A stretch of DNA of 40,076 nt from Epithemia pelagica. Taxonomy: Eukaryota > Protista > Bacillariophyta. The notes below the pieces were generated by a model, which saw nothing but the letters and a program-made list of their open reading frames with translations, made no database searches and was not told the DNA's origin. Below, in pieces: positions 3,566 through 28,058 of the stretch. The translations under genes and the position numbers were made by a program. The stretch covers positions 1 through 40,076 of the forward strand of contig OX337243.1 in the NCBI GenBank assembly GCA_946965045.2, written 5' to 3'. Positions within the stretch are counted from its first letter, which is position 1; every line of letters starts with the position of its first letter.

Positions 3566-3605
3566 ACACACTTTATTTAATACTTGATTATATTTTAGTA
3601 TATAT

Positions 3606-4575
3606 CAAATCAATTTTGCATAATTATTTGGTCATTTGGTTGAAAAGATATAATTTTAATAAATAATTTTCAACCACAAATTTGAAAATTTTATTTAAAA
3701 ATTGAAAATTTGTGGTTCAAAATTCGGTATATAATAAGGCTTAAATTAGTATCAAAATCACAAAAAATCATAAATCATAGGTAGTAACCTATGATTTTAT
3801 TTATCTGTTTTGGTTATCCGTTTTTTATTTTTTAAAATAGTATAAAAAATCAATGATAATCAATTTATTAATAAGTGATTTTAATTATCATTTTATTTCA
3901 TTTTATTAAAATAAAAATAATTTTGCATAATTATTTGGTCATTTGGTTGAAAAGATATAATTTTAACAAATAATTTTGAACCACAAATTTTCAATTTTAT
4001 TTAAAAATTGAAAATTTGTGGTTCAAAATTCGGTATATAATAAGGCTTAAATTAGTATCAAAATCACAAAAAATCACAAATCATAGGTAGTAACCTATGA
4101 TTTTATTTATCTGTTTTGGTTATCCGTTTTTTATTTTTTAAAATAGTATAAAAAATCAATGATTTTAATAATTAATAATTAATTTTGATTATCATTTTAT
4201 TTCATTTTATTAGAATAAAATCAATTTTGCATAGTTATTTGGTTATTATTTTTTAAGTAGTATAAAAAATCAATGATAATCAATTTATTAATAAGTGATT
4301 TTAATTATCATTTTATTTCATTTTATTGAAATAAAAATAATTTTGCATAATTATTTGGTCATTTGGTTGAAAAGATATAATTTTAATAAGTAATTTTCAA
4401 CCACAAATTTGAAAATTTTATTTAAAAATTGAAAATTTGTGTTTCAAAATTCGGTACATAATAAGGCTTAAATTAGTATCAAAATCACGAAAAATCATAA
4501 ATCATAGGTAGTAACCTATGATTTTATTTATCCGTTTTCTATTTTTTAAAATAGTATAAAAAATCAATTTTCACA
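3606..4575. repeat. repeat locus 1: about 3 copies plus a truncated copy of the ~305-bp hairpin unit
   Basis: Marker GGCTTAAATT at 3738, 4044, 4465; TTTTGCATA at 3614, 3921, 4225, 4341. Boundaries approximate. Confidence 0.95.
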
Positions 4576-4645
4576 GTTATTTGGTTTAATTGTATAATAA
4601 GTGTTATTATAAATCGATTTTCATATTAAATTTTTATAATATAGT

Positions 4646-4873
4646 ATGTTATTACAAGCAGCAAAATGCATTGGAGCTGGTTTAGCCACATTTGGTTTGG
4701 CTGGTGCTGGTATTGGTATTGGAAATGTTTTTGGTTCTTTATTAAATTCAATGGCTCGAAATCCCTCGTTGAAAGACGAGCTTTTCAAAATGGCTATATT
4801 GGGTTTTGCTTTAACCGAAGCTATAGCATTGTTTTCATTAATGATTGCTTTTTTATTATTATTTGCTTTTTAA
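4646..4873 (+). CDS. atp9: ATP synthase subunit c
   Basis: [11 protein letters not shown]...ARNPSL...[11 protein letters not shown]; MLLQAAK N-terminus is diatom-like. Confidence 0.99.
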
Positions 4874-4898
4874 TATTAATTAAAAAGCAAATAATAAC

Positions 4899-4971
4899 AA
4901 GTATATAACTCAATTGGTTGAGTGTGAGCCTTTTAAGCTTAATTATTTAGGTTCGAATCCTAATATACTTG
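4899..4971 (+). tRNA. trnK: tRNA-Lys(UUU)
   Basis: Acceptor AAGTATA/TATACTT, arm TGAGC-CTTTTAA-GCTTA, T arm TTAGG-TTCGAAT-CCTAA. Confidence 0.93.
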
Positions 4972-4974
4972 TTA

Positions 4975-5292
4975 ATGTTTGAATTAATTTTTTATATTAT
5001 AACTTGCAATATTTTAATATTTATTATTGGTTTTTTCGGTATATTTATAAATAAACGGAATATTTTTATGATTTTGGTTTCCATTGAAGTTTTATTTTTG
5101 GGCTTAAATTTAAATTTTGTAATTACTGCTATATATTTAGACGATATTGTTGGACATATTTTTGTTATATTTATTTTAACTATTATAACATGTGAATCCG
5201 CAATTGGCTTATCATTATTGATAATATTATATAAATTAAAAAAGTCCATTGATATTAATTTAGTTAAAGGATTATTATTAACGAAATTTTAA
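4975..5292 (+). CDS. nad4L: NADH dehydrogenase subunit 4L (ATG 4975)
   Basis: GIFINKRNIFMILVSIE...LDDIVGHIF...CESAIGL motifs. Confidence 0.96.
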   Translation: MFELIFYIITCNILIFIIGFFGIFINKRNIFMILVSIEVLFLGLNLNFVITAIYLDDIVGHIFVIFILTIITCESAIGLSLLIILYKLKKSIDINLVKGLLLTKF

Positions 5293-5322
5293 GTTGTAAC
5301 AATTAAAAAATAATAAACAAAA

Positions 5323-5526
5323 ATGCCTCAGTTTGATTTATTACTTATTTTTTCACTATTAAAAGACTTAACATTAACTTTAATATTTTATTATTTAACT
5401 TTTTCAATTTTATTTGTGCAAAATATAACAACATTTAAATTTCGAACAAAAATTTTAAAAACTCAAAATTCAATTTTATTAAAAGCTATTATAACTGCAA
5501 ACAAATTATTGTTTAAAACTATATAA
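5323..5526 (+). CDS. atp8: ATP synthase subunit 8
   Basis: MPQFD N-terminus, one hydrophobic segment, basic tail (FKFRTK). Confidence 0.9.
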
Positions 5527-6182
5527 TAGTTTTAAACAATAACTTGTTTTTTATACAAAAAATTAAAATGAGTATTAAAAAAGTATCATTATTATTATAT
5601 TTAATTACTAATGGTATACAAATACCACATTACTGTTTTTATAATGATTTATCAATAGCGGGTAATTGCCGAGTTTGTTTAGTTGAAATTAATAAAGCAC
5701 CAAAACCTATAGTATCATGTTCAACCAATATTGAAATTATTTTAAATAAAAATCAAATTTTTTTTGATACTCCATTAGTTAAAAAAGCTCGTGAAAATAT
5801 AATTGAATTTTTATTATTGAACCATCCATTAGACTGTCCGATTTGTGACCAAGGTGGCGATTGTGACTTACAGGATCAGTCAATTTTTTTTGGTTTTATT
5901 AAACGTCGTTTTTTTAATTACAAACGTATTGTTAACGATAAGGAACTTGGACCTATTATAAAAACTGTTATGACAAGGTGTATTCACTGCACGCGTTGTG
6001 TTAGGTTTTTTAATGATATTTGTGGATCAAATGAGTTAGGTGTTTTTGGGCGGGGTAATAAAAGTGAAATTGGATCATACACACATAAAATAATATTTTC
6101 CGAGCTATCAGCTAATGTAATTGATATTTGTCCTGTTGGTTGGTTGACTAATCAAATTTTCAATAGGAGCGTTAACGACTAA
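5526..6182 (+). CDS. nad11: NADH dehydrogenase subunit 11, N-terminal Fe-S part; start uncertain (ATA 5523/5526, TTG 5544 or ATG 5568)
   Basis: [35 protein letters not shown] and DICPVG Fe-S motifs. Frame open from 5517. Confidence 0.95.
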
Positions 6183-7704
6183 AAATTATCCTTTTGAAAT
6201 ACGTGGGTGGGAAATTCAACAAATTGTGCATTTTGATCCGATTGACACTTTTTGTTCAAATGTAAAATTTTTAATTAATAAAAATCAAATTTTGCAAATC
6301 GAACCAACTTACTCAAGTCAATTTCATAAAAACTCATATATAAATAATAAAACACGTTATTTTTTTGATGGTCTAAAAAATTTTAATACTACTAATTTTC
6401 TATTTTTTAATAAAATTAAAAAATTAGCCAAAACTTTAGTACAAACATTGTATATTTTTGAATTAAATTTTTTAAAATATCGGTTTATAAGTTATTTTTA
6501 TATTGTTTATGAATACTTAAATTTAAATTCGTTATGTTTATTAGCTTTATTTAAACAAAAATACTTTTTCTTTAAAATTATCAATGCTAATAATGTTAAA
6601 ACAAATAATAATTTAGAGCATACTTTATTGTTTAATTTAATAAAATTAAATAACTCAAATATGTGTTTATTAATTAATTCAAATATAAAATTGCAAAATA
6701 GTTTATTATATTTAAAACTAAAACAGCGTTTTTTGAAAGGTTCCTTTAAATTATTTAGTATTAGTTCATTTTTTAATTTAGTTTTTTCATTTAAATTGTT
6801 GAGTAATAATTTAAAAACTCTTATTTTGATTACGGAAGGTCGCCATCCAATTTGTCAAAATATAATAGCTGCGAAAGCACCATTTTTTATATTTAATTCC
6901 GATTTATATAAACGTATTGATAATCCTATTATTTATATAATTATGTTATATTTAAATAAGTTCATTTATTTTTACAAATTAAATATATTAAATTCATCAA
7001 TTTGGAATACTGGTATTAATTTAATTAATACAGATTCTAACAACACTAATAAAATTATTTATCAATTTAGTTTTATTTATTTTATTAATATTGAAAATAA
7101 AAATTTATTAATATTAACAAAAATTAAATTACTATATTTAACAAAAATTATTAACTTGATGTCAATTAAAAAAACATATCTAAATCAAAATTATTTTAAT
7201 ATGTTTTCAAATTCATTAGTATTACCGAAAAATTCAACTCATTTTTATTTACCAACAAAAAATATATTTGAAAATATCGAATTATTTTTCAATACACAAG
7301 GAATCATAAAACAAACAAACAAATTATTTTCGTTGAATAATTTAAAATCAAGTTGGAAATTATTACGAGTTCTATTAACAAAGTTAAATACTGTAAACCA
7401 AATTATTAAAAAAACTATATTTGTTAATTATAACTTATTTAGCCATTTTAATTTTATTTTTATTATTTTTTTATTTTATTTGGCCAAAAAAATAATTACA
7501 AAAAATTTAACAATAAATAATAGTAATACATTTATATTTAAAAATATATTATTTAATATAAATAAACAAGTTAAATACGTAAATACAATTATTAAATTTT
7601 CATTAAATGACTTTTTTATTGGCAATGATGGCTTCACTAATCAATCATTAATTTTAATAAAATGTTCAAAAATTAATCGAATTCAAGTAACAAATTTCTT
7701 TTAA
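6163..7704 (+). CDS. nad11: NADH dehydrogenase subunit 11, C-terminal part; no ATG near its 5' end, proposed ATA 6163
   Basis: Frame open from 6148 reads [22 protein letters not shown]..., matching the Nad11 consensus GALTSKPYAF.ARPWE. Later [12 protein letters not shown] and EGRHPICQ motifs also match. Confidence 0.88.
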
Positions 7705-7708
7705 ATGA

Positions 7709-9199
<1,491 letters not shown>

Positions 9200-14680: not shown

Positions 14681-14707
14681 AGTAAACATTGAAATATATT
14701 CAATTGT

Positions 14708-17700
14708 TATTATTTTTAAAAATAGTATAAAAAATAAATGATTTTAATAATTAATTTTGATTATCATTTTATTAAAATAGAATCAATTTTGTATAATTAT
14801 TGGGTCATTTGGTTGAAAAGATATAATTTTAATAAATAATTTTGAACCACAAATTTAAAAATTTTGCCAAAAAATTGAAAATTTGTGGTTCAAAATTCGG
14901 TATATAATAAGGCTTAAATTGGTATCAAAATCACAGAAAATCACAAATCATAGGTAGTAACCTATGATTTTATTTATCTGTTTTGGTTGTCTGTTTTTTA
15001 TTTTTAAAAATAGTATAAAAAATCAATGATTTTAATAATTAATAATTAATTTTGATTATCATTTTATTTCATTTTATTAAAATAAAATCAATTTTGCATA
15101 ATTAGTTGGTCATTTGGTTGAAAAGATATAATTTTAATAAATAATTTTGAACCACAAATTTGAAAATTTTATTTAAAAATTGAAAATTTGTGGTTCAAAA
15201 TTCGGTATATAATAAGGCTTAAATTAGTATCAAAATCACAAAAAATCATAAATCATAGGTAGTAACCTATGATTTTATTTATCTGTTTTGGTTATCCGTT
15301 TTTTATTTTTAAAAATAGTATAAAAAATCAATGATTTTAATAATTAATAATTAATTTTGAACCACAAATTTGAAAATTTTATTTAAAAATTGAAAATTTG
15401 TGGTTCAAAATTCGGTATATAATAAGGCTTAAATTAGTATCAAAATCACAAAAAATCACAAATCATAGGTAGTAACCTATGATTTTAGTTATCTGTTTTG
15501 GTTGTCTGTTTTTTATTTTTAAAAATAGTATAAAAAATCAATGATTTTAATAATTAATAATTGATTTTGATTATCATTTTATTTCATTTTATTAAAATAA
15601 AATCAATTTTGCATAATTAGTTGGTCATTTGGTTGAAAAGGTATAATTTTAATAAATAATTTTGAACCACAAATTTGAAAATTTTATTTAAAAATTGAAA
15701 ATTTGTGGTTCAAAATTCGGTATATAATAAGGCTTAAATTAGTATCAAAATCACAAAAAATCATAAATCGTAGGTAGTAACCTATGATTTTATTTATCTG
15801 TTTTGGTTATCCGTTTTTTATTTTTAAAAATAGTATAAAAAATCAATGATTTTAATAATTAATAATTAATTTTGATTATCATTTTATTTCATTTTATTAA
15901 AATAAAATCAATTTTGCATAATTAGTTGGTCATTTGGTTGAAAAGATATAATTTTAATAAATAATTTTGAACCACAAATTTAAAAATTTTGCCAAAAAAT
16001 TGAAAATTTGTGGTTCAAAATTCGGTATATAATAAGGCTTAAATTGGTATCAAAATCACAAAAAATCACAAATCATAGGTAGTAACCTATGATTTTATTT
16101 ATCTGTTTTGGTTGTCTGTTTTTTATTTTTAAAAATAGTATAAAAAATCAATGATTTTAATAATTAATAATTGATTTTGATTATCATTTTATTTCATTTT
16201 ATTTCATTTTATTAAAATAAAATCAATTTTGCATAATTAGTTGGTCATTTGGTTGAAAAGGTATAATTTTAATAAATAATTTTGAACCACAAATTTGAAA
16301 ATTTTATTTAAAAATTGAAGATTTGTGGTTCAAAATTCGGTATATAATAAGGCTTAAATTAGTATCAAAATCACAAAAAATCATAAATCGTAGGTAGTAA
16401 CCTATGATTTTATTTATCTGTTTTGGTTATCCGTTTTTTATTTTTAAAAATAGTATAAAAAATCAATGATTTTAATAATTAATAATTAATTTTGATTATC
16501 ATTTTATTTCATTTTATTAAAATAAAATCAATTTTGCATAATTAGTTGGTCATTTGGTTGAAAAGATATAATTTTAATAAATAATTTTGAACCACAAATT
16601 TAAAAATTTTGCCAAAAAATTGAAAATTTGTGGTTCAAAATTCGGTATATAATAAGGCTTAAATTGGTATCAAAATCACAAAAAATCACAAATCATAGGT
16701 AGTAACCTATGATTTTATTTATCTGTTTTGGTTGTCTGTTTTTTATTTTTAAAAATAGTATAAAAAATCAATGATTTTAATAATTAATAATTGATTTTGA
16801 TTATCATTTTATTTCATTTTATTTCATTTTATTAAAATAAAATTAATTTTGCATAATTAGTTGGTCATTTGGTTGAAAAGGTATAATTTTAATAAATAAT
16901 TTTGAACCACAAATTTGAAAATTTTATTTAAAAATTGAAAATTTGTGGTTCAAAATTCGGTATATAATAAGGCTTAAATTAGTATCAAAATCACAAAAAA
17001 TCATAAATCGTAGGTAGTAACCTATGATTTTATTTATCTGTTTTGGTTATCCGTTTTTTATTTTTAAAAATAGTATAAAAAATCAATGATTTTAATAATT
17101 AATAATTAATTTTGATTATCATTTTATTTCATTTTATTAAAATAAAATCAATTTTGCATAATTAGTTGGTCATTTGGTTGAAAAGATATAATTTTAATAA
17201 ATAATTTTGAACCACAAATTTAAAAATTTTGCCAAAAAATTGAAAATTTGTGGTTCAAAATTCGGTATATAATAAGGCTTAAATTGGTATCAAAATCACA
17301 AAAAATCACAAATCATAGGTAGTAACCTATGATTTTATTTATCTGTTTTGGTTGTCTGTTTTTTATTTTTAAAAATAGTATAAAAAATCAATGATTTTAA
17401 TAATTAATAATTGATTTTGATTATCATTTTATTTCATTTTATTTCATTTTATTAAAATAAAATCAATTTTGCATAATTAGTTGGTCATTTGGTTGAAAAG
17501 ATATAATTTTAATAAATAATTTTGAACCACAAATTTGAAAATTTTATTTAAAAATTGAAAATTTGTGGTTCAAAATTCGGTATATAATAAGGCTTAAATT
17601 AGTATCAAAATCACAAAAAATCATAAATCATAGGTAGTAACCTATGATTTTATTTATCTGTTTTGGTTATCCGTTTTTTATTTTTAAAAATAGTATAAAA

Positions 17701-18877
17701 AATCAATGATTTTAATAATTAATAATTAATTTTGATTATCATTTTATTTCATTTTATTAAAATAAAATCAATTTTGCATAATTAGTTGGTCATTTGGTTG
17801 AAAAGATATAATTTTAATAAATAATTTTGAACCACAAATTTAAAAATTTTGCCAAAAAATTGAAAATTTGTGGTTCAAAATTCGGTATATAATAAGGCTT
17901 AAATTGGTATCAAAATCACAGAAAATCACAAATCATAGGTAGTAACCTATGATTTTATTTATCTGTTTTGGTTGTCTGTTTTTTATTTTTAAAAATAGTA
18001 TAAAAAATCAATGATTTTAATAATTAATAATTAATTTTGATTATCATTTTATTTCATTTTATTAAAATAAAATCAATTTTGCATAATTAGTTGGTCATTT
18101 GGTTGAAAAGATATAATTTTAATAAATAATTTTGAACCACAAATTTGAAAATTTTATTTAAAAATTGAAAATTTGTGGTTCAAAATTCGGTATATAATAA
18201 GGCTTAAATTAGTATCAAAATCACAAAAAATCATAAATCATAGGTAGTAACCTATGATTTTATTTATCTGTTTTGGTTATCCGTTTTTTATTTTTAAAAA
18301 TAGTATAAAAAATCAATGATTTTAATAATTAATAATTAATTTTGATTATCATTTTATTTCATTTTATTAAAATAAAATCAATTTTGCATAATTAGTTGGT
18401 CATTTGGTTGAAAAGATATAATTTTAATAAATAATTTTGAACCACAAATTTAAAAATTTTATTTAAAAATTGAAAATTTGTGGTTCAAAATTCGGTATAT
18501 AATAAGGCTTAAATTAGTATCAAAATCACAAAAAATCATAAATCATAGGTAGTAACCTATGATTTTATTTATCTGTTTTGGTTATCTGTTTTTTATTTTT
18601 AAAAATAGTATAAAAAATCAATGATTTTAATAATTAATAATTAATTTTGATTATCATTTTATTTGATTTTATTAAAATAAAATCAATTTTGCATAATTAT
18701 TTGGTCATTTGGTTGAAAAAATATAATTTTAATAAATAATTTTGAACCACAAATTTAAAAATTTTATTTAAAAATTGAAAATTTGTGGTTCAAAATTCGG
18801 TATATAGTAAGGCTTAAATTAGTATCAAAATCACAAAAAATCACAAATCATAGATAGTAACCTATGATTTTATTTAT
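14708..18877. repeat. repeat locus 2: tandem array of 14 copies of the ~305-bp unit
   Basis: Marker GGCTTAAATT at 14911, 15216, 15426, 15731, 16036, 16351, 16656, 16971, 17276, 17591, 17896, 18201, 18506, 18811 (spacings 305 or 315, one 210). Confidence 0.98.
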
Positions 18878-18912
18878 TAGTTTTAGTATGTTGATATTGT
18901 TTTAAAAATCAA

Positions 18913-23249: not shown

Positions 23250-26075
23250 TAAATAAAATTATTTCTAAAATGCATCAAATAATAACCTTTATATTAAAAC
23301 ATAATATCGACGTATAAAAACGAAATATATTTATAACAAACATAATCAAGTTAAATTTAAATATTATCGACCATTAAAAAATAACTTATTTTATATTTAA
23401 GTTTTTTATAAATAAAATAAAAATAAATTTAGTGAACCGAAACATCCTAGTAACTAAAATAATTAAAATCAAGCGAGAGTTTATTATTAGTTGTGAACAA
23501 AAATAAACAAAATACTAATTTACTTTTATTTATTTTAATTTTAAGCTAAAAAAGGATAGCCCTGTAAAAATATAAAAATTAAATTAAAAACATAACAATA
23601 ATTTATTGTATTGTTAAAATAAGGAACTAACCTTACAATTTAAAGTTTTAATATTATATAGCATATTTAGTACTGTAAAGGAAATTTGGTGAATAGCTTT
23701 TTCGAAATTGTAACAATTAAAATTTGATGTAAATAAATTTTTATAGTTTAATTTTAAAAACAATAAAGTACCTTTTGAATAATGGATTAATAAGTTTATT
23801 TTAAAAGCAAGCTTGAATTAAATATTATATACAAAAGCTAAAAAAAATTAAGTTTTAAAAAGCAAAGCATATTTAAGTTTTTAAAATAATTACCCGAAAC
23901 CGAGTGATTTAACCATAAACAGACTAAAAATTAATTTTTAAATTATTGGAAGGTCGAACCCGTACATGTGGCAAAATGTTGGGATGATTTATGGTTAGTG
24001 GTGAAATGCTAATCAAACTCGGAAATAGCTGGTTTTTTGCGAAATATATTTTAGTATAGCATTAAAAAAATTATGTTAAAGGTAACGCTATTAATAAACA
24101 ACGGAAATTAATATTTTACGAAGTTTATTTAAACTGTGAATTTTAACCAAAATTTTTTAATAGTCAAACATTGAATGCTAAGGTTCAAATTTGTTTAAAG
24201 GGAAACAGCCCATATTAATAGTTAAGGTTTTCAAAAGTAATTTATTAAAAAATAATCAAAAATTAAAAAATTTTGTATGTATGCTTGGAACCAGCGATCA
24301 TTTAAAGAGTACGTAAATGTTCACTAAATTAAATTTTGAATATTTATAATTAATAAAATTTAAATTATTTAATACCGAAACTTTAAATTTAATATATTAC
24401 TTAATTATAAATAATATTAAATGGTAGCAAAACGTCCTGTTAAGTAATAGTTGGAATTTTTTTTATAGTAATATAAATTTTTATCAGGATTGATAATATT
24501 AATATTAGTAATTTTAAATAATAAATAAAAATCATTATCATTTATTAGTTCACAGGTTCCAAAAAATTAATTTTTGGTTGTAAATCGGACCCTAAAAAAA
24601 TAACGACAGTTTTATTTTTAATGGGTAAATATTAGTTAAATTCATTATTATTAAATTAATGACAATATTTAAACTAATAATATATTTACTGGTTTATAAT
24701 AAAATATTAATAAAAATATTCAGGAAAAAATTAATTTTATAAAGCTTTGCTTTATAACCGTACATGACCGACACTGGTGAATTTATTTAGTATATAAAAA
24801 TGTTTATAAAAATTATATTAAAGGAACTCGGCAAAAAAGCCTTATAACTTTGGTTAAAAGGTCAATAAATAATAAATAAATTAAAGTATTTATTATAATT
24901 TATAAAAACAAAAACAGCGCCTGTTTAACAAAAACTTAGGTCCTTGCGAATTTGTAAAAACTAGTATAAGGACTGATGCCTGCCCAGTGCGAATCAGATC
25001 AAAGAGTACTAACATTATTTTGTTAATATTTCAAACTATCGTAAACGGCAGCTGTAATTTTGACAGTTCAAAGGTAGCGAAATTCCTTGGCATTTTATTG
25101 GTGTCCTGCATGAATGGCATAACGACTGTTTAACTGTCTTTAATATAAATATAATGAACTTATAATTTTTGTGCAAATACAAAACAATTATGAAAAGACG
25201 GAAAGACCCCATGAACCTTTACTATAATTAAATACTGTTAATAAAAATTTTGTATAAAGGATAGGTGGTTTTGTTATTATTAATTTGTTAATTTATTGAT
25301 GCTTATTTTATCAACATTAATAAGCACTAATAATTATAATTGGTATTAAATTTTTATTATTGTACAATAAAATATTTTTAACTAGTATGGAATACCACTT
25401 ATGAAATTTTATTTTAACTAATTTTTAACAAATTATATAAAAAATATTTATTTAATTGGTAGTTTGACTGGGGCGGTGGCCTCCTAAAATGTAACGGGGG
25501 TGTATAAAATTAATTTCACACAAAAATATAATAGTTAATATAAATTAATTGACTGTAAAATTAACCAATTAAACAGGGATTTTAATTAATCGATTATAAT
25601 GATCCAATCATTCAAAATGGTATGCTGATTGCTTAACGAATAAAAGGTACTCTGGGGATAACAGGTTAATAATTTTTGCGAGCTCCTTATCAACAAAATT
25701 GCTTAATACCTCGATGTTGGATTATCCCATCCTGGAAATGCATTTGTTTCCAAGGGTTTGACTGTTCGTCAATTAAAGGGGTACATGATCTGAGTTCAAA
25801 ACGTCGTAAGACAGTTTGGTCCTTATCTTTCACAATTGATAAAAAAATTAAGAGGCTTAAATTTTAGTACGAAAGGACCAAATTCAATAAGTAAATGATG
25901 ATTCAGCTATATTACCAAATGTAATCGCTGATTAGTTAAACTTATAAAAAATAACCATAAAAATATGTGGGAAATTTTCCTTTAATTATAATTTTTTAGT
26001 ATAAATAATAAACTATTATTTTAATAGGTTTAAAGTTTAATAAATTAAAATGCTTTAAAAAACTAACAATATAAT
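23250..26075 (+). rRNA. rnl: large subunit rRNA (ends approximate), no intron seen
   Basis: Motifs GAACCGAAACATC, CCCGAAACCGAGTGA, GGAACTCGGCAA, GGTAGCGAAATTCCTTG, GGGGATAACAGG, CCTCGATGTTGG, AGTACGAAAGGACC. Confidence 0.98.
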
Positions 26076-27950
26076 AAATCAATTTTGCATAATTTTTTGG
26101 TCATTTGGTTGAAAAGATATAATTTTAATAAATAATTTTGAACCACAAATTTGAAAATTTTATTTAAAAATTGAAAATTTGTAGTTCAAAATTCGGTATA
26201 TAATAAGGCTTAAATTGGTATCAAAGTCACAAAAAATCACAAATCATAGGTAGTAACCTATGATTTTAGTTATCTGTTTTGGTTGTCTGTTTTTTATTTT
26301 TAAAAATAGTATAAAAAATCAATGATTTTAATAATTAATAATTGATTTTGATTATCATTTTATTTCATTTTATTAAAATAAAATCAATTTTGCATAATTA
26401 GTTGGTCATTTGGTTGAAAAGGTATAATTTTAATAAATAATTTTGAACCACAAATTTGAAAATTTTATTTAAAAATTGAAAATTTGTGGTTCAAAATTCG
26501 GTATATAATAAGGCTTAAATTAGTATCAAAATCACAAAAAATCATAAATCGTAGGTAGTAACCTATGATTTTATTTATCTGTTTTGGTTATCCGATTTTT
26601 ATTTTTAAAAATAGTATAAAAAATCAATGATTTTAATAATTAATAATTAATTTTGATTATCATTTTATTTCATTTTATTAAAATAAAATCAATTTTGCAT
26701 AATTAGTTGGTCATTTGGTTGAAAAGATATAATTTTAATAAATAATTTTGAACCACAAATTTAAAAATTTTGCCAAAAAATTGAAAATTTGTGGTTCAAA
26801 ATTCGGTATATAATAAGGCTTAAATTGGTATCAAAATCACAAAAAATCACAAATCATAGGTAGTAACCTATGATTTTATTTATCTGTTTTGGTTGTCTGT
26901 TTTTTATTTTTAAAAATAGTATAAAAAATCAATGATTTTAATAATTAATAATTGATTTTGATTATCATTTTATTTCATTTTATTTCATTTTATTAAAATA
27001 AAATCAATTTTGCATAATTAGTTGGTCATTTGGTTGAAAAGGTATAATTTTAATAAATAATTTTGAACCACAAATTTGAAAATTTTATTTAAAAATTGAA
27101 GATTTGTGGTTCAAAATTCGGTATATAATAAGGCTTAAATTAGTATCAAAATCACAAAAAATCATAAATCGTAGGTAGTAACCTATGATTTTATTTATCT
27201 GTTTTGGTTATCCGTTTTTTATTTTTAAAAATAGTATAAAAAATCAATGATTTTAATAATTAATAATTAATTTTGATTATCATTTTATTTCATTTTATTA
27301 AAATAAAATCAATTTTGCATAATTAGTTGGTCATTTGGTTGAAAAGATATAATTTTAATAAATAATTTTGAACCACAAATTTAAAAATTTTGCCAAAAAA
27401 TTGAAAATTTGTGGTTCAAAATTCGGTATATAATAAGGCTTAAATTGGTATCAAAATCACAAAAAATCACAAATCATAGGTAGTAACCTATGATTTTATT
27501 TATCTGTTTTGGTTGTCTGTTTTTTATTTTTAGAAATAGTATAAAAAATCAATGATTTTAATAATTAATAATTGATTTTGATTATCATTTTATTTCATTT
27601 TATTTCATTTTATTAAAATAAAATCAATTTTGCATAATTAGTTGGTCATTTGGTTGAAAAGGTATAATTTTAATAAATAATTTTGAACCACAAATTTGAA
27701 AATTTTATTTAAAAATTGAAAATTTGTGGTTCAAAATTCGGTATATAATAAGGCTTAAATTGGTATCAAAATCACAAAAAATCATAAATCATAGGTAGTA
27801 ACCTATGATTTTATTTATCTGTTTTGGTTGTCTGTTTTTTATTTCTAAAAATAGTATAAAAAATCAATGATTTTAATAATTAATAATTAATTTTGATTAT
27901 CATTTTATTTCATTTTATTAAAATGAAAATAATTTTACATAATTATTTGG
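26076..27950. repeat. repeat locus 3: tandem array of 6 copies of the ~305-bp unit
   Basis: Marker at 26207, 26512, 26817, 27132, 27437, 27752. Confidence 0.98.
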
Positions 27951-28058
27951 TTGAATTGGAAAATATAAAAAAAATAAACATAAATAAACAACGTATAAGT
28001 AATTAGTTTATTTTAATAACTAATTACTTGAGATAAACAAGCCAACTTAGAAAAAGCT

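Follow-up and report, generated by a model that had tools for sequence, protein, structure and literature searches.

The nad11 locus

The window (the whole analysed stretch of 40,076 nt, contig OX337243.1 of the Epithemia pelagica assembly GCA_946965045.2) is an AT-rich mitochondrial genome using the standard genetic code; the genome carries trnW(cca), and TGA was therefore taken as a stop. Genes around the locus run in the order atp9, trnK, nad4L, a 67 aa ORF starting MPQFD, nad11a, nad11b and cox1. The 67 aa ORF (5323–5526) has no Pfam match, keeps its position between nad4L and nad11a in relatives, and is probably atp8. Elsewhere in the window, long repeat blocks at ~14,700–18,900 and 26,000–28,000, and also at 3,600–4,570, share 88–98 % mutual identity with many inverted matches of 60–66 nt, and are probably the repeat region of the mitogenome. 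A nuclear-sized contig of the same assembly (C13) contains what appears to be a whole mitochondrial copy of ~44 kb, at about 381,700–426,000. The part tested (L091, C13:406633–410233, against window positions 4400–8000) is 100 % identical over 3.6 kb, including the nad11 junction. Either a large piece of mitochondrial DNA entered the nucleus very recently, or the contig is a chimera of the assembly.

The features at the nad11 junction are as follows.

5568–6182, forward strand: nad11a coding sequence, iron–sulfur N-terminal domain of the complex I 75 kDa subunit; 204 aa, ATG at 5568, TAA at 6180–6182
6135–6161, forward strand: first linker copy, VGWLTNQIF, the C-terminal tail of Nad11a, from the reading and from orthologue tails
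6145–6147, forward strand: TGA, the last upstream stop in the nad11b frame, which confines any start to 6148–6165
6163–6165, forward strand: ATA, the most likely nad11b start, directly 5′ of GGA GCG TTA ACG (GALT)
6163–6182, forward strand: 20 nt shared by the 3′ end of nad11a and by nad11b (frame +1), read from the sequence
6163–6189, forward strand: second linker copy, IGALTTKNY, the N-terminus of Nad11b one frame over, from the reading and from 43 nad11b sequences
6163–7704, forward strand: nad11b coding sequence, molybdopterin-like C-terminal domain; 513 aa, stop at 7702–7704

In Pfam searches nad11a contains Fer2_4, NADH-G_4Fe-4S_3 and a complete Fer4_Nqo3 that ends ..CPVGWLT, a separate iron–sulfur ORF that stops just past the last Cys ligand. 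Its orthologues are ~200 aa long with 66–78 % identity, and the 75 kDa chains of complex I in the PDB match it at E of about 1e-74. Among the nad11a matches, the only named relatives are Haslea species, which are raphid. The molybdopterin-like C-terminal domain likewise has its own ORF, nad11b (Pfam Molybdopterin, E = 4e-16). Full-length orthologues of nad11b are 505–552 aa long with 35–47 % identity, and its PDB profile match to 75 kDa subunits begins at profile position 1.

The nad11b frame is open from 6148, with the next in-frame GTG at 6226 and the next in-frame ATG at 6661. These positions match the original prediction, which had noted that nad11b has no ATG before 6661 and that GTG 6226 lies beyond conserved residues. 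A comparable overlap of the two ORFs is present in four relatives (L004, L005, L006 and L008).

Two copies of the inter-domain linker

Both nine-residue segments at the junction align with the single VGALTSKPY linker of unsplit Nad11, and taking out 28 nt would bring nad11a and nad11b into one frame. The readings and coordinates originally given for 6135–6190 were all correct when re-read from the sequence. Judged within the window alone, the repeat is weakly significant and suggestive only: the two 28-mers are identical at 15 of 28 positions, a score equalled by 2.8 % of the window's block pairs at an offset of 28, and the two 9-mers have a BLOSUM62 score of 16, equalled against IGALTTKNY by 10 of 7448 proteome 9-mers.

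Solved structures of the intact subunit place the two segments more firmly. In the Arabidopsis subunit (7ar7_G), nad11a corresponds to residues 41–222 and the nad11b profile begins at 214; the second copy aligns with V214–F222 of this chain and with V228 onward of the mouse chain (6g2j_G). In Tetrahymena (7tgh_S1), nad11a covers residues 55–235 and nad11b runs from 229 onward. The nad11a end ..CPVGWLTNQ(I) aligns to ..CPVGALTSKP of solved complex I, and the nad11b profile starts on the same Val. Since the linker residues of solved intact subunits are matched by both halves, the doubling is real at the protein level, and the earlier statement that both segments match the Nad11 consensus agrees with the structures and with the relatives alike.

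Linker copies in split and unsplit relatives

All 119 nad11a relatives end CPVG-x-(L/F/I/V)-T-x-K-x-(Y/F) followed by 0–9 further residues. Conservation in this tail alternates: V is present in 119 (100 %), G in 114 (96 %), L/F/I/V in 117 (98 %), T in 94 (79 %), K/R in 92 (77 %) and Y/F in 97 (82 %), while the positions in between are free. This pattern shows that the tail is translated and under selection.

The other copy is equally regular. About 90 nad11b relatives begin (M/I)GALT-x-K-x-F, in fuller form MGALT-x-K-x-FPFELR-x-W, and 43 nad11b sequences show no variation at G2, A3, L4, T5, K7, R14 and W16. Eighteen protein relatives are of nad11b size: 10 begin MGALT.K.F, 2 read ..FIGALT and 6 were called from an internal Met. 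Two database nad11b proteins read ..LFIGALTNK. A scan of metagenome contigs yielded 80 loci, of which 78 begin MGALT.K.F; of the other two, L034 begins IGALT, with ATA, and L087 is unsplit. Since MGALT.. was itself one of two search patterns behind this set, ATG is over-represented in it. In about half of the metagenomic loci nad11b lies away from nad11a (no nad11a within 120 nt upstream), and in the 28 loci with adjacent halves the distance from the Val codon to the start ranges from 25 to 87 nt in all three phases. Eight metagenomic relatives (L036, L051, L054, L059, L066, L069, L078 and L081) have TGA at the invariant Trp of nad11b codon 16 (..ELRGWE..), which points to genetic code 4 (TGA = Trp) in these genomes, unlike the window.

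In unsplit Nad11 of the diatom type, Minutocellus and Hemiaulus included, the segment CPVGALTSKPYPF..R.WEL occurs once in 126 of 126 proteins, and none of the 126 holds a second in-frame linker copy. Every split relative examined thus has the double motif, and 0 of 126 unsplit proteins do, which answers the comparison of split and unsplit junctions that the original prediction had proposed: two copies in the former, one in the latter. One further nad11 ORF, P0006 (300 aa, on a 30.6 kb contig), carries one linker copy and breaks off after ~60 residues of the C-terminal domain; an intron may follow, which would make it an exon, or this nad11 may be split at another point.

A different species (L004) repeats the geometry of the window exactly, with the 28 nt offset, the ATA and a tail reading ..FNRSFNK before the stop. 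This makes an indel in the assembly unlikely. An error of that kind would mean either that the gene is truly continuous or that the ATA is a miscalled ATG; the junction region is AT-rich with homopolymer runs, and the evidence consists of assemblies rather than reads. However, one indel cannot make a second copy of the motif, and besides L004 there are further relatives with ATA and one (L007) with ATT. The junction was also assembled a second time, on contig C13, identically over 3.6 kb, although this copy may come from the same reads. An artefact is accordingly considered very improbable.

As far as the sequences of relatives go, the doubled linker is neither peculiar to the window genome nor to a length of 28 nt; it accompanies the known fission of nad11 in raphid pennate diatoms. 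By the same comparison, both copies are under purifying selection at the protein level across the sampled diatoms with split nad11.

The start of nad11b

For eight close relatives the junction DNA was obtained by way of nad11a, which makes it unbiased with respect to the start of nad11b. In these genomes the codon aligned to 6163, directly before GGN GCN TTA ACN, is ATG in L001, L005, L006 and L008, ATA in L002, L004 and L009 as in the window, and ATT in L007; the metagenomic L034 also has ATA. The ratio of 4 ATG : 4 ATA : 1 ATT refers to the nine genomes reached through nad11a only. Spacings in the nine are 28, 40, 29, 28, 31, 28, 29, 28 and 30 nt, placing nad11b in phase +1 relative to nad11a in six, +2 in two and 0 in L009. 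In the last of these (L009:1591–1660), nad11a, a TAG, the ATA and nad11b follow one another in a single frame (..TVF-stop-IGALTNK..), a minimal form of the split.

In a maximum-likelihood tree of nad11b, L005 (ATG) and L009 (ATA) are close sisters, and ATG, ATA and ATT are scattered through the clade of the window, all ORFs being intact. Synonymous sites in nad11b codons 2–5 vary freely (GGA/T/C/G, GCT/A/G/C, TTA/CTN/TTG and ACA/T/G/C), which places the constraint in the peptide rather than in an RNA signal.

By position in this alignment, ATA 6163 and the ATG with which nad11b starts in relatives are homologous codons, and nad11b most likely initiates at this AUA, 17 nt before the nad11a stop. 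These data agree with the simpler of the two alternatives originally put forward, in which two polypeptides are made and ATA 6163 starts nad11b. A start elsewhere, at ATC 6151 or GTG 6226, would likewise give two polypeptides. The former codon is available within the open frame and the latter is a more conventional start, from which the database protein of this genome (P0121) was in fact called. With initiation at 6226, however, 21 residues would be lost, among them positions that never vary in 43 orthologues; the residues encoded by 6148–6162 are not conserved in relatives, and the sole conserved start-like codon is the one immediately 5′ of GGN GCN. A start at either of these other codons is thus unlikely.

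ATA, ATT, GTG and TTG have been annotated as starts in other diatom mitochondrial genes (PMC3423374). The nad11b start resembles these non-AUG starts in having a near-cognate ATA where orthologues carry ATG, and in both cases, as far as was found, the near-cognate start is placed by alignment, not by protein data.

Bypassing, frameshifting and read-through

The original prediction raised the possibility of a ribosomal hop; take-off at GGT 6138 and landing at GGA 6166 would skip 28 nt and yield one Nad11 of ~700 aa. Programmed bypassing, as in T4 gene 60 and the byp elements of Magnusiomyces mitochondria, involves a non-decoded gap of 27–55 nt between matched codons. The window is similar in having a short gap between matched codons, the removal of which would restore one frame: the pairs GGT/GGA, TTG/TTA and ACT/ACG lie 28 nt apart, and nad11b has a conserved N-terminus that lacks an ATG. 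Matched take-off and landing codons, which here are synonymous and not identical, are however expected from a doubled peptide motif alone. Unlike the known systems, the window lacks a stop or unusable codon after take-off, and it has neither a significant hairpin nor a GC-rich insert. The codon following GGT is TGG, and the frame runs 14 codons further. For the RNA of 6120–6215 the minimum free energy, −16.2 kcal/mol, is no better than that of shuffled sequences (mean −15.6; z = −0.2), giving no stable structure, and the 28 nt gap is 32 % G+C. In addition, the ‘gap’ encodes a conserved protein tail: a hop would skip the Nad11a tail, which is translated, as the selection on its amino acids in 119 relatives shows.

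The geometry needed for a hop is not conserved either. Spacing and phase differ among close relatives, some have an ATG start and in some the halves are unlinked, and such relatives cannot hop; the exchange of ATG and ATA between sister taxa also argues against it. With spacings of 25–87 nt in varying phase, halves that are often unlinked and begin with ATG, no stop after take-off and a fold at z = −0.2, the proposed hop is not supported and is regarded as highly improbable.

A +1 frameshift or a read-through of the stop would instead give a fused protein with both linker copies in tandem. The frames of nad11a and nad11b overlap by 20 nt, and in L009 the halves share one frame with a single TAG between them, which speaks for such an event. 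However, there is no conserved slippery site, the frame relation among relatives is +1, +2 or 0, and 0 of 126 unsplit Nad11 proteins contain an in-frame double copy. The halves are moreover unlinked in many species, both among the loci analysed here and in published genomes (PMC6007386), which speaks against any fused product. A fusion of this kind is scarcely to be expected, and recoding at the nad11 junction has, taken as a whole, a slight chance at most.

Age and origin of the duplication

The two copies in the window share 64 % of their bases at the first two codon positions and 44 % at position 3, where composition alone predicts 34 %. The DNA similarity between the copies is therefore mostly due to constraint on the peptide. 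The synonymous codon pairs once read as a DNA footprint of duplication therefore reflect amino-acid conservation. The 28 nt duplication that was proposed to have shifted the frame stands as a duplication of the linker; an origin in the present lineage does not stand, the doubling being common to all sampled split diatoms. Thus 28 nt is the present spacing in the lineage of the window, and the original length and phase of the duplication are not recoverable.

The data fit one old duplication tied to the fission of nad11. A short tandem duplication and a whole-gene duplication with complementary loss leave the same footprint and are indistinguishable in these data. That the fission proceeded by duplicating the boundary and then cutting, with both copies selected for structural roles, is a tentative proposal and somewhat doubtful. 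If it is true, each fragment obtained a complete domain edge from a short duplication of the linker.

Comparison with other split 75 kDa subunits

Fission of nad11 has been assigned to the ancestor of raphid diatoms, each half having its own start and stop (PMC6007386; PMC8987724). The gene is split in 33 of 39 Bacillariophyceae (Wang et al., 2022; PMC8987724), and the halves lie between 14 nt and 22 kb apart, sometimes on opposite strands (Guillory et al., 2018; PMC6007386). The E. pelagica locus has the same break, between the iron–sulfur and the molybdopterin-like part, with two ORFs as in the published raphid genes (PMC3423374; PMC6007386; PMC8987724). In Phaeodactylum the halves are adjacent on the same strand, 13 bp apart, and those of the window are also adjacent on the same strand. 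The window is unlike published raphid split nad11 in its 20 nt ORF overlap and in its probable ATA start in place of ATG. Fistulifera solaris, Proschkinia and Pleurosigma are ‘unsplit’ raphids, and within Mediophyceae the only split nad11 is reported from Odontella aurita var. minima.

That split nad11 is already known, Phaeodactylum included, was stated in the original prediction and agrees with these accounts. A duplication footprint at the split was said there to be undescribed, and no description of one was found: a linker kept in both halves is not described in the literature examined, which does not include the original description of 2011, and a literature search on nad11 gene fission and duplication returned nothing. 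Thus the split, the position of the break and non-ATG starts have already been published, whereas the family-wide doubling of the linker is apparently unreported.

In complex I of Euglena gracilis the same core subunit is also made as two chains, NDUFS1A and NDUFS1B, roughly an N-terminal iron–sulfur and a C-terminal molybdopterin-like part, and this split has been solved structurally (PDB 8IUF; PMC10884005). Unlike nad11, the Euglena genes are nuclear, and the break lies inside the β-sheet of subdomain II of the C-terminal domain and not in the domain linker. Nor has a duplicated segment been reported for the Euglena subunit (PMC10884005), in contrast to diatom nad11. Independent fissions of stramenopile nad11 are known from eustigmatophytes, the PX clade, bicosoecids and labyrinthulids (Sevcikova et al., 2016; PMC4824035). 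These took place at an inter-domain position equivalent to that in E. pelagica, but one half has moved to the nucleus (PMC4824035).

Proposed arrangement and roles of the two copies

The explanation held here with considerable confidence is a fissioned nad11 of the raphid type that gives two polypeptides, with an AUA start at 6163 and an old duplication of a linker of ~9 codons kept in both halves. Nad11a (204 aa, iron–sulfur, 5568–6182) and Nad11b (513 aa, molybdopterin-like, 6163–7704) would be made separately. The AUA at 6163 falls within the last 20 nt of nad11a, and initiation may be independent of termination or coupled to it; coupling is plausible from the overlap. The fission would have come with the old duplication of the inter-domain linker (VGALTSKPY), presumably in tandem. 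The copy in Nad11a, which follows at once on the Cys-Pro of the last iron–sulfur ligand, is the C-terminal tail of that chain, and the copy in Nad11b is the N-terminus of the other.

The ferredoxin-type CxxCxxCxxxCP motifs and the domain boundaries of Nqo3/NDUFS1 suggest roles for both. On this basis, the copy in Nad11a may complete the fold around cluster N4, and the copy in Nad11b may provide a conserved lead-in to the C-terminal domain. Alternatively, the Nad11b copy may fill the groove of the ancestral linker, or may pair with the Nad11a copy and so hold the two chains together. The ancestral structural position has room for a single linker copy, although both copies are conserved. An AlphaFold2 model of Nad11a built from a 60-sequence alignment had a pLDDT of 41.6, too poor for structural use.

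Implications

The locus is best annotated as two genes, with nad11b starting at ATA 6163, and not by the mechanical call at GTG 6226, which loses 21 conserved residues; no recoding event is needed for nad11 at this locus. The frequent interchange of ATG, ATA and ATT at one conserved start site speaks, on comparative grounds, for non-AUG initiation in diatom mitochondria. The doubled linker also poses a structural question, namely where each copy is seated in diatom complex I. In the sampled diatoms with split nad11, the selected nine-residue linker present in both products is a molecular footprint of how the fission happened. Should the nad11 genes that split independently in other stramenopiles prove to have the same double linker, this would point to a general rule for the splitting of this subunit.
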